The translations under genes and the position numbers were made by a program. DNA of 64,000 bases from Epithemia pelagica (Eukaryota; Protista; Bacillariophyta): contig OX337228.1 of assembly GCA_946965045.2 (NCBI GenBank), positions 6,448,001 through 6,512,000 of the forward strand, written 5' to 3'. The notes under the pieces are model-generated. The model worked only from the letters and a program-made list of their open reading frames with translations. It was not told the DNA's origin and searched no databases. Below, piece by piece: positions 5,061-62,700 of the stretch (positions are counted from its first letter, which is position 1; each line of letters starts with the position of its first letter).

Positions 5061-5648
5061 TTAAAACACACGACATGGGTTCCGCATCAATATCCAAGAG
5101 GCTGATGACTGGAGCCCAGAGGCAACACCCACGAGAAATGGCAAGCCATCCTTGAACACCAAACACGAGACTGCCGCTCCTGCCTCCAACACGACGGAAA
5201 ATGCAAACAAGAAGGGCGATGCAGATTTGAACTCTGGATCGAAAAAGGGCAACATTTTGTGGCGCAATCCTTGAGTATTAAAGTAGGGTTCGTGTTCTTC
5301 ATCCTCATTGTCATAGTCTTCTTCTTCTTCTTCGTTTTGTTGTTGCTGTTGTGTCGTCGTCATCGACTTGTTCTTGTTCTTGTTCTTGTCGCCGTCGTCG
5401 TCTTGGTTGTGGTTTCGTAACAGAGGAGCCGTGTCCTCTTGGCTCCGCTGCCCTCGAGGTACGCCCGACGGTTGATTGTTGTGTAGTTGGGCTGTGCTGC
5501 TGCCCTCGACCCTCAACAATGCCCCGAATAAACCGACCCCGCTGCCTCGCACCTCTATGGTCAGATCGCCAAACAACACGAAACGCCAACAACACGCAAC
5601 AATCCAACACGCACAAAAAACAAATACGAACGAAATACGATTGACCAT
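5061..5648 (-). CDS. Hypothetical protein with Q/E/N runs and hydrophobic segments
   Basis: 195-aa ORF with poly-Q/E tracts typical of this genome; gene structure uncertain. Confidence 0.3.
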   Translation of the reverse strand: MVNRISFVFVFCACWIVACCWRFVLFGDLTIEVRGSGVGLFGALLRVEGSSTAQLHNNQPSGVPRGQRSQEDTAPLLRNHNQDDDGDKNKNKNKSMTTTQQQQQNEEEEEDYDNEDEEHEPYFNTQGLRHKMLPFFDPEFKSASPFLFAFSVVLEAGAAVSCLVFKDGLPFLVGVASGLQSSASWILMRNPCRVF

Positions 5649-5682
5649 GATGATGTGTGATTGTGATTACTGTTACGAAAAG

Positions 5683-6429
5683 ATGATCAGCTCCGAATGG
5701 GCTCAGTTAGTTGCTCCTTTTGTGACTCTCATACTGTGTTACGGTGTCGCTCATGTCCTCGATGAGGCGAAACTTATCGTCCAACACCTGTTTCGGGTCA
5801 TTTTCAACAAGAAAAGTCGTACTACAGGTAGCGAACACGCGGAGCTTCGACACGAACATGCGGAGCTTCGACAGCTTCGACACGACAAAGCTCAGCTTCA
5901 ACAACAGCTGGCCATTGCCGAAGCAAAGCTTGCTGCGAAGAACTGCAAGAATGGTCGCCACGAGGATGGAGAGATCGAGATTCGCGATCACGAGGAGGAG
6001 GTCGACGTCGACACTATTGCTGTTCTGCCTTGCGAGTTCGACGCTGACTTGGACTTCCCTCCTCTCGCACTCGCAGACGATCTCGAGGACGACGAGGAGA
6101 GCCCTCCAGTTCCAGTCGACCGTCATCAGCCTGAGCCCGAACCCGCGCTCCCTGACGACGACGAGATCACTTTGGGGCACGACTCACCCCCTCGAAACTC
6201 TGCCCCTTCTTCCGTTGTCGCCACCCATCCCCCCACCCCCACCCGAAAAGATACCTCGCCTCATATGGATGAGAATGCCCCCCAAAGCGTGATCGAGAGT
6301 TCCGCCGGCCCCGAGAACACCCCGCGTTTGGGCAGAATCCTTACTGTTGCCTACTCCAAAAAGGTACACGGAATGGTGCACGTTCGACGATCCGCTCGTC
6401 TTTTGTCCGCGGGTACGGGTAAAAAATAA
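5683..6429 (+). CDS. Hypothetical protein: N-terminal hydrophobic helix, coiled coil, acidic/Pro linker, C-terminal RRSARL motif; possibly element-borne
   Basis: Intronless ORF from ATG 5683 ending VRRSARLLSAGTGKK*, followed by an A-rich run; lacks the host-type poly-Q/T/N runs. Confidence 0.5.
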   Translation: MISSEWAQLVAPFVTLILCYGVAHVLDEAKLIVQHLFRVIFNKKSRTTGSEHAELRHEHAELRQLRHDKAQLQQQLAIAEAKLAAKNCKNGRHEDGEIEIRDHEEEVDVDTIAVLPCEFDADLDFPPLALADDLEDDEESPPVPVDRHQPEPEPALPDDDEITLGHDSPPRNSAPSSVVATHPPTPTRKDTSPHMDENAPQSVIESSAGPENTPRLGRILTVAYSKKVHGMVHVRRSARLLSAGTGKK

Positions 6430-6610
6430 AAAAACAGAAATATAACATGTCGGCTGTCGGTTGCCAGTGGTACGTTCGCACGTTCGTGTCGGTTATGAAT
6501 CTTTCCATACTCTCACTCTACCCCTTCTTCTGTTTCTAGCGATTGCAAAATTCTACTCCTACTCCTACATCAGCTGAGTCTAGCTCGAGTCCTTGTCGGA
6601 GATGTCCTTG

Positions 6611-6784
6611 TTGGTTTGTTGGTTTGTTGGTTTGTTGGTTTGTTGGTTTGTTGGTTTGTTGGTTTGTTGGTTTGTTGGTTTGTTGGTTTGTTGGTTTGTT
6701 GGTTTGTTGGTGTGTTGGTGTGTTGGTGTGTTGGTGTGTTGGTGTGTTGGTGTGTTGGTTGTCGGTGTGTTGGTTGTCGGTGTT
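6611..6784. repeat. Compound 8-mer microsatellite: 12x TTGGTTTG, 6x TTGGTGTG, 2x TTGGTTGTCGGTGT(G/T)
   Basis: Counted directly from the sequence. Confidence 0.95.
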
Positions 6785-6785
6785 A

Positions 6786-7124
6786 TCACAAAACCCTGGT
6801 GGCACGAGGACTTTGTCCTTGTGTCACCAGGTATGGCATGGAGACTTCGGTCTCTGTGCCATCTTGGAAGAGTGCCATAGTTGCCCCTGGAGAATCCATT
6901 GATTCCTCCGGGCTTCCTAATTTTCACAAAACCCTGGTGGCACGAGGACTTTGTCCTTGTGGCACCAGGTATGGCATGGAGACTTCGGTCTCTGTGTCAT
7001 CACAAAACCCTGGTGGCACGAGGACTTTGTCCTTGTGTCATCAGGTATCGCATGGAGACTTCGGTCTCTGTGCCATTGGGGAAGAGTGCCATAGTTGCCC
7101 CTGGAGAATCCATTGATTCCTCCG
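6786..7124 (+). repeat. Three tandem copies of a 76-bp double-hairpin unit; copies 1 and 3 extend by about 48 bp with a third hairpin
   Basis: Units start at 6787, 6925 and 7001: CCTGGTGGCACGAGGAC-TTT-GTCCTTGTGTCACCAGG and TGGCATGGAGAC-TTCG-GTCTCTGTGCCA. Confidence 0.95.
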
Positions 7125-7329
7125 CTTCCCTACCTGCTGTATTTAAGTGTTGGGTTGATCAATAACAAGGGGATTAGTTTTTCGGCTCAAATGTTTCTAT
7201 ATAACATGTAGTGGTAACAATAGCAAGTGGAACATTTGAACATGCACGACAACATTGCTGACTAGCGATTCCTAGGTGTAGTTGACAATCAGAGAGGATG
7301 AATGGTAATTGCTGTTTAAGTGGCTGAAG

Positions 7330-7969
7330 CTACTTCATGTGCTTCTTTGTGAGCTTTCTTGCCTTCCCTACACCAGCGCGACCCTTCTTTTTCCGGAATC
7401 TTGATGGTCCAAGTCCATCATCACATTCGTAGTCGAGAGCCGTTTCTCCCTTGGCATACTGTCCCTTTCTTATCTTTCTCCCTTTTTCAACACCACCACC
7501 CTCAACTACGCTCTTTAGCACCTTCATACTTCATTCTGCGAAAGCTTCTTTCCAGTTGCACTCTCGTATTTTGTTTTCTTAACATCTTTTTGCGCTCTGG
7601 TTCATCCTCTCTCATTTTGTCAAATCGCCCCATGGATACTGTTGATCGTGGAGTGGCCAAGAGAGCAGAAACAGTGGAATCCTTGCCACGCTTCATGGAT
7701 GATATCGGTCCACTCTTTTTTGTCGCCTGCAAGTCTACTGGGACGCCAGGTATGTTGACGCTCGAAACATTGTCACGATCCATGTTTCCACCGGCCTTAC
7801 CAGCCTTTCTCGATTGGATATTTGATTTCATAGAGCGAGAAGTGGTGCCCTTTGCCAAGACTCCCGCACGTTCCTGATTGGGCATACGTTGTTCTGTGTT
7901 TTTCTCCATTCGGGCACGCTTCGCTTCGTGACCATGGAATCGATGCTCGAATCCACCGCATAGCGACAA
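7330..7969 (-). pseudogene. Basic (K/R-rich) protein ORF broken by a frameshift at about 7522-7534
   Basis: ORFs 7502-7969 and 7330-7527 join (…FRRMK|VLKSVVEGG…) if the duplicated ATGAAG(T) is removed. Confidence 0.4.
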
Positions 7970-59707: not shown

Positions 59708-62700
59708 TTAGGGACACACAAGGGGAACCGTTGCCGAACAGCAGTCAATGGTACCAATGGACGGCGACGCTTCGCACACCGGGCAGTCTGCCTCCAATCT
59801 ATCGAGACTGGCGAAACGCAGCCCACACACACTACCCGGGATTCCTCCGGTGAATGAATTGTTAAACAGAGTCAATACCTCCAGAAAAAAGAGTGTGGAT
59901 CCCCACTCAGTGGGGATTGTGCCCGTAAACGAGTTGTCGTGGAAAAACAGTTGAGTTGTAGTATCATTCCCGATCCGCGGAGGCAACTGCCCACTGAACC
60001 TGTTTTGCGTCACGGAAAGACTAATCAAACTGGTAAATGTCGAGAAGAACGTAGGGATCGTACCACTGAGATCGTTTTCGTCGATCCAAAGAAATCCTTA
60101 ATTCGACCAAGAAAAAAAACATAAGTGAGATCATACCACGAGCCTCACTCTTGTTCGACCCAGGTCTTGCGAAACGTACGGAGCGTGTCAGCCAAGTTCT
60201 GAGCAAAATTGATGTTGTTTCCAACAAAGCCGCATTTTCTCAGGAAGGCGAAGCGGAGGGCAGGTAGATCTCCAAGTGTGGGAGGAATCGTCGAGTTGAA
60301 TTTGTTGAACTCAATCTCCAGGAACTCTTCAAATAAAACGGACCGAGAATAATGATAAGACTATTGCTCTGACGTGAGTATCTCAACCTCATAGGCAAAG
60401 ATCCACTTACCAAGTGCCGTCATGTCCGACGGAAATGCAGCTCCGTCCAGTGCGCCTGAATACAGATTGCTTGCACATCCGTAGGCAACCAACCTCTTGA
60501 GATTGCCAATTTCAGTTGGGATGCCCGTTAAACTGATAAAGTTGACTTCGTCATGTCGCAACTCAACGAGATTTGTAAGCTGCCCTATAACCGTTGCATA
60601 TTCTTGTAGGGCAAACACTGGAGTTTGCCCAACATCAAGAATTTCAAGAGTAGGACCCAAAAGAGCGAGTTCCTCAGGCATCCGCCCTGTCAGAAGATTA
60701 TTGAACTATTTTGACGTCAGAGAACATGCTTTTCCATAAATGGTCCAGCGAAATAGTGATGACTATGAACCACGTACCATATCAATACCAGTGACTTGTC
60801 CGGCGGCATTACAATTTAACCTCACCCACCCACATTCTGGGCTATTTTCCAGCCAGCCGTTTGTTTGGAGCCAGGGGAAAACCACGCCCTCACCAAATCT
60901 GAGATCGGTGAAAAAAGTCCTCACGTTGTTTGTAGCGAAGTAAAAGCATACCAGTACCCACCGTTGAATCACTTGAGCGTCAGACATTCCTGTTCTGTCC
61001 GAGTCACATAACCACTCAAGTGATTGACTTTGGTATGATGCCGGGTCTGACAAAGCAGTGACATTCAATGATACGCTTTCAATCAAACCACGAACAGTAC
61101 AAGGAGTTGGAGCCGCGGTAGGAGCAACTGTGGAAAAACACAAGAAAAGGTCAGACAAACTGGGAAGGCATAATCGCGGAGCATCCGAGTTTGACTGGAA
61201 GAGTTTACTTTGACTTACGCGTCGTCGGTTGATCCGTTGGTGGATTTGTTGGTGCATTAGTCGGTGGATTTGTGGGTTGATCTGTTGGAGGATTGGTCGG
61301 TGGATTTGTTGGTGCATTGGTCGGTGGATTTGTTGGTTGATCTGTTGGTGGATTAGTCGGTGGATTTGTTGGTTGATCTGTTGGTGGATTAGTCGGTGGA
61401 TTTGTTGGTTGATCTGTTGGTGGATTAGTCGGTGGATTTGTTGGTTGATCTGTTGGTGGATTAGTCGGTGGATTCGTTGGAGCATTTGTTGGCGGATCCG
61501 TTGGAGCATTTGTTGGTGCCGGTGTGGGAGGGGGTGTTACGGCAGTCGGCGGAGGCGTAGCTGGGGTTGGAGCCGAAGTAGGAGCATCTGTGGGTGGATC
61601 TGTCGGCGGATTTGTGGGCGGATTTGTTGGGGGATTAGTCGGTGGGTTTGTTGGCTGATCTGTCGGTGGATTTGTTGGGGGATTAGTCGGCGGATTTGTC
61701 GGCGGGTTTGTTGGTTGATCGGTTGGTGCATTTGTGGGTTGAGGTGTCAGAACCGTGGGTAGATCCGTAATGGAAGTTGGAGCAGGAGTCGGTTCATCCG
61801 TCGGTATGGATGTTGGTTCAAGCGTTGGTTCTGGTGTTGGGACAAGAGTTGGCGTGAGGGTTGGTTCGTCTGTCGGTGGAAGAGTCGTTGGAACCGTTCC
61901 TGGTGTGGGTTCCGTAGTCGGCACTGCGGTTGTCGGTGCATTAGTCGGAATATTGGTGGGCGCATCAGTTGGGGCGTTTGTTGGCGGCACAGTGGGGTCA
62001 ACATTCGTGGGAGATGGAGCAGATGTAGTCGGCGATGTGGGAATATTTGAAGGGGCAAACGAAGGAATATCACTCGGAGAGGCTGACGGAAACGCTGTTG
62101 GCAAGGGAGTTGTCGGGAGAACTCCGGTTGGTGACGATGTCGGTATGTCAGTTGGTGAAGGTGTTGGGCTATCTGTCGTTGGTACGGACGGAGAGGGAGC
62201 ATTGGTCTCCGTTGTTGGACTTGTCGTGGGGTCAAAGGATGGCTCTTCCGTCGGTGTAGATGAAGGGCTTTCTGAAGGTGCATCACTTGGACTAGCAGAA
62301 GGCGATACCGAAGGTGTAGCAGACGGAACATCAGATGGTTCAGCTGAAGGTGTCTGTGATGGACTCGATGACGGTGAATCACTGGGACTAACAGAAGGAC
62401 TAGTAGAAGGAGCATCACTTGGACTTGTAGAAGGAGCATCACTGGGACTTGCAGAAGGTGCATCACTTGGACTGGCAGATGGAGACACCGAAGGTGTTGC
62501 TGACGGGGAATCCGAAGGGGCATCGGAGGGCCGAGCTGAGGGTGTTTCTGACGGAGTTGTTGACGGCGCTTCACTGGGACTGACCGAAGGCGTCTCCGAA
62601 GGTGATGATGAAGGTGACTCCGAAGGTGAGGCTGAAGGCGAAGCAGACGGAGCATCGGACGGCTCGGCTGAGGGTGTCTGCGATGGACTCGACGACGGAG

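Follow-up and report, generated by a model that had tools for sequence, protein, structure and literature searches.

The 770-bp stretch at positions 6440–7209 of the DNA analysed here (the window, 64,000 nt of the Epithemia pelagica genome, C1:6448001–6512000 in an assembly of 60.5 Mb and 23 contigs, denoted by C and a number) was shown to be no discrete element but the 3´ part of a gene cassette that belongs to a set of paralogs. In almost every copy the cassette, of ~1.6–2 kb, runs from an orphan open reading frame (ORF) through a variable Lys-rich/A-rich repeat, a conserved segment and a variable microsatellite to an array of one to four modules composed of three hairpins, A, B and C. At the level of sequence, these hairpins were shown to be strand-specific and maintained on the sense strand of the gene. 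On balance, the array is probably a family-specific, structured cis-acting RNA element in the 3´ untranslated region (UTR) of the gene, as the comparison of its copies suggests.

A gene cassette and not a mobile element

The initial annotation of the stretch proposed a non-autonomous mobile element bounded by an 11-bp direct repeat, a single-strand origin or a structured non-coding RNA family, and suggested that its copy number and ends be determined across the genome. The stretch is indeed multicopy, and so are its two flanks. About 30 copies of the cassette were found, clustered within a few hundred kb of contig ends on C1, C2, C3, C4, C8 and C13, with the distance to the end measured on C1–C3: the copies fall within the last 0.76 Mb of the 6.98-Mb contig C1, within the first 0.62 Mb of C2 and in both end regions of C3. 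Discrete ends are not seen, as homology with the ~30 paralogs runs through both of the proposed ends. In a pile-up of 24 loci, the depth is ~21–23 loci from 5529 to ~7144, lower over the microsatellite, and the coverage steps are graded outward (5464, 5343 and further on the left; 7393, 7401 and 7928 on the right). The upstream alignment is made of short reshuffled motifs, with no sharp element end.

Furthermore, no inverted-repeat pair that could represent terminal inverted repeats brackets the stretch within 6300–7400. An empty site was also sought among the genome's paralogs, and no close paralog lacks exactly this stretch, the hairpin-less copies being distant fragments. Searching the whole genome for the hairpin A/B units gave 67 matches, all at gene-family loci, which lie directly downstream of a family ORF in all but two cases (C1:6417119 and C2:461336). 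No larger autonomous element carrying the hairpins, the partner predicted for a non-autonomous transposon, was found among these 67 matches, and the hairpin-A pattern has no match in the JGI metagenome or IMG/VR contigs.

Two other kinds of mobile origin were considered and rejected. Retroposed mRNA copies are out, as the 3´ continuations form several homologous groups that share no common 3´ end and have no A-tract. A Helitron-like end was discarded after reading the 7144 junction of the cassette by eye, where there is no CTRR-type terminus.

The exact repeat, ATATAACATGT, is present at 6440–6450 and 7199–7209, but it does not behave as a target-site duplication, since the paralogs differ. 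The position of the left 11-mer is occupied in them by AAATAACATGT, AAATAACTTGT, TTACATGT or AAAAACATGT, with homology unbroken from the ORF across it, while the right 11-mer lies within ...TTCTATATAACATGTAG..., conserved in a dozen copies and homologous on either side. Exact identity between the left and right 11-mers is confined to the window copy and its recent duplicate. The chance expectation of an exact 11-mer repeat within ~1.1 kb is ~0.1–0.15, and when the window is shuffled and one mismatch is allowed, three or more matches to the 11-mer turn up in 4 of 100 shuffles. The exact 11-bp repeat is no more than chance would produce, that is, coincidental.

The left 11-mer, together with three TGTCGG motifs, is ancestral coding sequence, because most paralogs read on past the stop of the window copy. 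The ORF of the window copy ends with a TAA at 6427–6429, whereas most paralogs translate a Lys-rich tandem repeat, then ...ITCRLSVASGTCA.SCRL, and only then stop. The A-rich DNA repeat after the stop of the window copy corresponds to this Lys-rich coding repeat, and the three TGTCGG motifs in 6430–6498 correspond to Cys-Arg codons in the paralogs. The frame of the window copy is closed 22 codons earlier by a TAA or TAG, as it is in the siblings of this copy on C1; the early stop removes the C-terminal tail of ~22–55 amino acids that most paralogs encode. The recurrence of TGTCGG that had been annotated was borne out, with six motifs on the plus strand in 6448–6780.

On the right, the 11-mer is internal to a different repeat, which is joined to the cassette in this subgroup. 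This repeat trails the cassette in 12 loci and is found without cassette or hairpins at C1:6221575–6222313 (locus L040:5276–6079); it may be the 3´ part of a convergent neighbour gene or a separate element. Other copies of the cassette continue past 7144 with a different, GC-rich tail hairpin.

Architecture of the hairpin array

The composition first described for the stretch was confirmed, with the microsatellite, the three units, their stems, the TTT and TTCG loops and the third bulged hairpin of units 1 and 3 all present (Table 1). Hairpin B, described with a 12-bp stem, has 13 bp by count, and its C-TTCG-G closure stands in all three units. Inspection also corroborated that the sole non-Watson–Crick positions in hairpins A and B of unit 1 are 2 + 2 G·T pairs; units 2 and 3 have one true mismatch each. 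Unit 2 lacks module C. The microsatellite comprises (TTGGTTTG)12 at 6611–6706 and (TTGGTGTG)6 at 6707–6754 by exact count, and Tandem Repeats Finder assigns period 8 and 21.1 copies to 6608–6775. Its length and unit vary between copies, some of which carry the 13-mer TCCTTGTTGGTGG in place of the 8-mer unit, and the alignment depth there is only 3–8 loci.

Across copies, A-B invariably opens the array and C closes it, and both the order and the orientation relative to the ORF (sense strand) are constant, whereas the number of modules varies. The simplest string is ABC; the window copy and four others have ABC-AB-ABC, and AB-ABC-AB-ABC, ABC-AB-AB-ABC, ABC...C and variants with extra A hairpins also occur. 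Hairpin A begins 235–411 nt past the conserved end of the ORF, a distance that varies because the Lys-rich repeat and the microsatellite differ in length. The sequence leading into A (GGTGTTATCAC) is similar to the end of B plus the following unit (CTGTGCCATCAC), and slippage or unequal exchange at this short homology could add or remove units of 76 bp (AB) or ~140 bp (ABC).

A second subfamily, type II, has A-B followed by extra modules, in which long outer stems of quite different sequence surround hairpin C. These stems, such as AGTACATACAAT/ATTGTATGTACT and GAATACAT/ATGTATTC, are mutually unrelated, and both enclose hairpin C. A type II array is found at L048:6187–6990 (C2:620686–621489), with others at L039, L041, L047 and L050.

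One database protein of the family, P0020 (436 amino acids), reads through the microsatellite (as LVCW repeats) and two hairpin units. A coding reading of the array was nevertheless rejected, as 76 bp, the length of the unit, is not divisible by three and other copies do not preserve the frame; P0020 most likely stems from an erroneous gene call on a copy that lost its stop codon. Exact look-up of the small ORFs called inside the hairpins found them in the genome assembly only.

Folding and strand asymmetry

The hairpins sit on the sense strand of the ORF, and the folding energies are asymmetric in the same direction. As RNA, the array of the window copy folds with −186.6 kcal/mol on the plus strand (z = −12.0 against shuffles) and −146.1 kcal/mol on the minus strand (z = −5.4). 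The richer type II array reaches −319.4 kcal/mol in sense and −270.4 kcal/mol in antisense, so that the sense strand is 49 kcal/mol better. Folded as DNA, the plus strand of the array has z = −9.2 against shuffles. No match at the gathering score was obtained in Rfam 15 over the whole window, where only sub-threshold matches to generic hairpins appeared (E up to 5), and the richer array of another copy gave no Rfam match.

Selection on the fold

Changes among the paralogous hairpins are biased towards those that keep the pairs. In 48 aligned A+B units, G–C has become G·U in 42 cells, and pairs are broken in ~10. Among shared polymorphic paired columns, those in which the minor allele is found in at least two units, seven are C/T and none is A/G. 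The A/G changes in paired columns amount to five, all singletons, and there are no C/T singletons. Thus G-to-A changes arise but do not spread, whereas pair-keeping C-to-T changes spread.

This pattern is specific to the array. Shared polymorphic columns are C/T in 25 cases and A/G in four within the array, compared with 32 and 34 when the ORF, post-stop segment and downstream repeat are pooled (Fisher p = 5.6e-4). The C/T excess is confined to the array, and therefore no regional strand-biased mutation process accounts for it. The caveat first attached to the G·T pairs, that they could come from CpG deamination of a DNA palindrome, does not stand either: only 2 of ~10 C/T sites are in a CpG context, and the excess is restricted to the array. 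Moreover, the bulges and G·T pairs are invariant across 23–48 units.

Hairpin C diverges further between subfamilies and keeps its structure. Across these, 94% of its cells are paired, compared with 29–51% when the partner column is slid. Double changes are found at 7 of the 11 pairs, while the loop, the position of the bulge and the 5´ unpaired motif are kept. At the base of hairpin B in type II, A–T has changed to C–G along with a two-sided extension of the stem.

A probable structured element in the 3´ UTR

The structured non-coding RNA family that had been suggested for the stretch survives in part: the strand-specific, selectively maintained hairpins are there, but they form the tail of a protein-coding gene and not a free-standing element. 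In the interpretation favoured here, the array would be transcribed within the 3´ UTR of the family gene and would fold in the mRNA. It could then work as a family-wide cis-element, either a binding platform or a block to 3´–5´ decay, which would set the stability, localisation or translation of the mRNA. Its most likely function would be that of a shared protein-binding or decay-blocking platform. The recognition sites would be the conserved unpaired motifs (GUGCCAUAGUUGCC and the loop CCAUUG) and the invariant G·U pairs. In paralogs with the longer ORF, hairpin A begins only ~100–200 nt past the stop by our estimate.

A second gene has gained the hairpin tail by rearrangement, which argues for the same interpretation. 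At L035:282–1614 (C1:6844581–6845913, minus strand), an unrelated low-complexity ORF of 308 amino acids runs into a 5´-truncated type II array and has its stop inside the array; a duplicate of this fusion is found at C3:3940110.

A broader proposal is possible although rather doubtful. A previously undescribed RNA module in the 3´ UTR of every member of this end-proximal and fast-evolving family of membrane proteins would provide a single handle, through which proteins bind or RNAs pair, for the post-transcriptional control of the whole family, by which members could be stabilised, localised or mutually excluded. The number of modules, altered via slippage, would tune the dose. The unpaired GUGCCAUA of module C duplicates the 3´ arm of B and could compete for the 5´ arm of B as a conformational switch. 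A search of the literature on diatom subtelomeric families with stem-loops found nothing relevant.

Several observations weigh against a cis-acting RNA element. Covariation across copies, proposed from the outset as a check on the structure, is provided by hairpin C but not by A and B, in which no double compensatory changes are found among the 48 aligned units. Few independent events lie behind the double changes in hairpin C (type I versus type II, and IIa versus IIb), and template switching within palindromes at the DNA level can mimic them. Identity to the window copy is 96–99% in the hairpins, ~92% in the ORF and 90% in the post-stop segment, which speaks for the element, but the values for tandem units are biased upward by taking the best-matching unit per locus, and the similarity of the units could also be due to gene conversion. 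The special loop of hairpin B is not universal, with C-UUCG-G in 40 of the 48 units genome-wide and UUUG in the other eight. The A-rich stretch after the stop could serve as a poly(A) site, upstream of the hairpins. The family gene itself is kept open but is weakly constrained, because the mismatch rates at its three codon positions (0.066, 0.049 and 0.070) are nearly flat.

Finally, ~6 arrays have no ORF of the family. One is cut in the microsatellite (L039), another near the stop (L047), and in a third (L035) the truncation falls within a module, which is joined in sense to the final codons of an unrelated ORF; further probable cases lie at C11:96 kb, C17:14 kb and C13:1.308 Mb. Conversely, three ORF fragments have no array.

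Alternative explanations

The array could instead be a palindromic minisatellite acting at the DNA level in the 3´ flank of the gene, with no RNA role, made uniform by gene conversion among end-proximal paralogs and perhaps promoting fork stalling, breakage and ectopic exchange, by which the family would be reshuffled. This explanation, which we regard as unlikely, would account for the variation in module number and microsatellite length from copy to copy, for the rearrangement junctions inside the array or microsatellite and for the location of the copies in end-proximal, mosaic regions. It also agrees with the missing double changes in A and B and with a DNA fold far better than that of shuffles (z −9.2). 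However, a role of the duplex or of a cruciform should be strand-symmetric, and the plus strand folds 40–49 kcal/mol better. The restriction of the C/T excess to the array also argues against it, and template switching would erase the bulges and G·T pairs, yet these are the invariant features of the units.

A separate non-coding RNA gene or small-RNA precursor downstream of each member, for example silencing or coordinating the family, has a still lower probability. The array is always in sense to the ORF and shortly after it, and it matches no Rfam family beyond generic hairpins below threshold. Dicer-type enzymes normally process duplexes longer than the 13–17 bp of these stems. A conserved strand-specific structure, the few arrays without an ORF and the position of the array as the most uniform part of the cassette are what such a gene would lead one to expect.

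The ORF could also be regarded as a mobile 'gene cassette' with a single-strand DNA site for recombination or replication at its end, comparable with integron attC sites or bacterial REP/BIME elements, on which tyrosine recombinases or HUH enzymes act. Imperfect hairpins that are specific to one strand and lie 3´ of an ORF, in many copies and varied contexts, are reminiscent of such sites. Nevertheless, the ends of the cassette are neither sharp nor constant, copies share the promoter-like sequence upstream in a graded manner, the truncation points of partial copies are arbitrary, cassette junctions so far never fall at a fixed hairpin position and no recombinase is linked to the loci examined, making this very improbable.

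Least credible of all is a DINE-1/HINE- or MITE-like (miniature inverted-repeat transposable element) non-autonomous transposon at 6440–7209 with an 11-bp target-site duplication, to which the exact direct repeat and a superficially HINE-like mix of microsatellite, tandem core repeats and stem-loops had pointed, and which is refuted because the paralog alignments run through both proposed ends, in line with a left 11-mer that is unconserved and lies in ancestral coding sequence, a right 11-mer internal to another repeat, no terminal inverted repeats or empty site, hairpin copies found only at gene-family loci with no larger element sharing them, and no match in viral or metagenome contigs.

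The gene family and other features of the window

The features of the window copy are collected in Table 1. The ORF of the cassette, P0001 in the window copy, is without internal stop in almost all of the ~30 copies. In its product, an N-terminal hydrophobic helix is followed by a coiled-coil-like stretch, an acidic/Pro-rich middle and a conserved basic C-terminus, and the protein looks membrane-anchored. A search among 5.8 billion proteins recovered only 22 paralogs as relatives, all from the ENA assembly ERZ21939226 of the same organism. P0001 has nothing above cut-off in Pfam and no usable match in the protein Atlas.

Table 1. Positions, in window coordinates, of the parts of the cassette and of the repeat joined to it.
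Feature	Positions	Strand	Remarks
Shared upstream region/leader of the cassette	5530–5649	+	21/24 loci align from 5529
ORF P0001, 259 amino acids	5650–6429	+	orphan family, ~30 genes
Former coding tail	6430–6498	+	in frame with the ORF; holds the left 11-mer (6440–6450) and three TGTCGG
Conserved segment between ORF and microsatellite	6445–6607	+	22/24 loci align, ~90% identity
Microsatellite (TTGGTTTG)12 (TTGGTGTG)6 and degenerate units	6608–6775	+	Tandem Repeats Finder, exact count
Unit 1, hairpins A + B	6795–6862	+	A 6795–6831 (17 bp, TTT loop); B 6833–6862 (13 bp, TTCG loop)
Unit 1, module C	6866–6917	+	outer stem GGAAG/CTTCC; conserved unpaired AGTGCCATAGTTGCC; inner bulged hairpin 6886–6912, loop CATT
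Unit 2	6933–7000	+	A 6933–6969 and B 6971–7000 only; 76-bp unit
Unit 3	7009–7130	+	A 7009–7045; B 7047–7076; module C 7079–7130
Repeat distinct from the cassette but adjoining it in this subgroup	7145–7928		holds the right 11-mer (7199–7209); also found alone

Upstream of the family ORFs (5380–5530 in the window and the equivalent positions of paralogs), reshuffled tandem motifs, CCCGACGGTTGATTGTTG and CTGCCCTCGAGGTACG, vary in number from copy to copy and may be promoter elements. A minus-strand ORF of 195 amino acids at 5061–5648, back-to-back with the family ORF at a distance of 2 nt, figures as a gene in the ENA annotation, probably wrongly, because the graded left boundaries of the cassette cut through its frame.

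Elsewhere in the window, 61601–62143 holds another local cluster of TGTCGG, with seven motifs on the plus strand within 550 nt, and BLAST shows no relation to the cassette. In the rest of the genome, at least 11 full-length silicon-transporter (PF03842) genes were found, scoring 500–755 bits, on C11 (several in tandem pairs), C16, C1:6394216, C13 and C18, which marks the genome as diatom-type.

Significance and comparison with known systems

As an RNA element, the array would be among the very few structured cis-regulatory RNAs known in diatoms, and a eukaryotic counterpart of the REP-type hairpin arrays of bacteria that is modular, variable in copy number and common to a gene family near chromosome ends. 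The coordinated post-transcriptional control of the family could then be tested directly. Should the array be no more than a palindromic minisatellite of DNA, it would be a local curiosity that helps to explain rearrangements in these regions. Either way, a false mobile-element call is removed and the exact 11-bp repeat is shown to be coincidental. The array is best described as a candidate for a new structured cis-element that has support from covariation and comes from a group little studied so far.

Some likenesses to mobile DNA are only partial. Like DINE-1/HINE elements and MITEs, the stretch combines a microsatellite, tandem core repeats and stem-loops in less than 1 kb; unlike them, it has no conserved termini, terminal inverted repeats, target-site duplication, dispersal into unrelated sites or autonomous partner with the hairpins. 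An ORF with an imperfect hairpin behind it, well formed by one strand only, is also the arrangement of integron attC sites, although here there are no fixed cassette boundaries and no integrase platform, and the promoter-like DNA upstream is shared.

As RNA, hairpin B resembles the cUUCGg (UNCG) tetraloop hairpins, being closed by C-UUCG-G in all three units of the window and in most units of the genome. The UUUG units differ from a strict UNCG loop, which suggests that the special loop is not strictly required, and the whole hairpin matches no Rfam family.

Stem-loops common to the 3´ UTRs of a whole gene family are known from the 3´ end of replication-dependent histone mRNAs and from the SIDER-type elements of trypanosomatid gene families. 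The array shares with both a conserved sense-strand structure shortly past the stop across a multicopy family, conserved at least as well as the coding sequence. It differs in having three different hairpins in tandemly amplifiable modules behind a microsatellite and in belonging to an orphan family of one organism.

Finally, the REP/BIME palindromes of bacteria have been proposed to protect the upstream mRNA from 3´–5´ decay. Unlike these, the array is found in a eukaryotic nuclear genome, its hairpins go with a single gene family, apart from a few rearranged fragments, and are not scattered behind unrelated genes, and no RAYT-like enzyme is linked to it. However, both are imperfect palindromes with G·U pairs, variable in tandem number, placed just downstream of ORFs and strand-specific as RNA.

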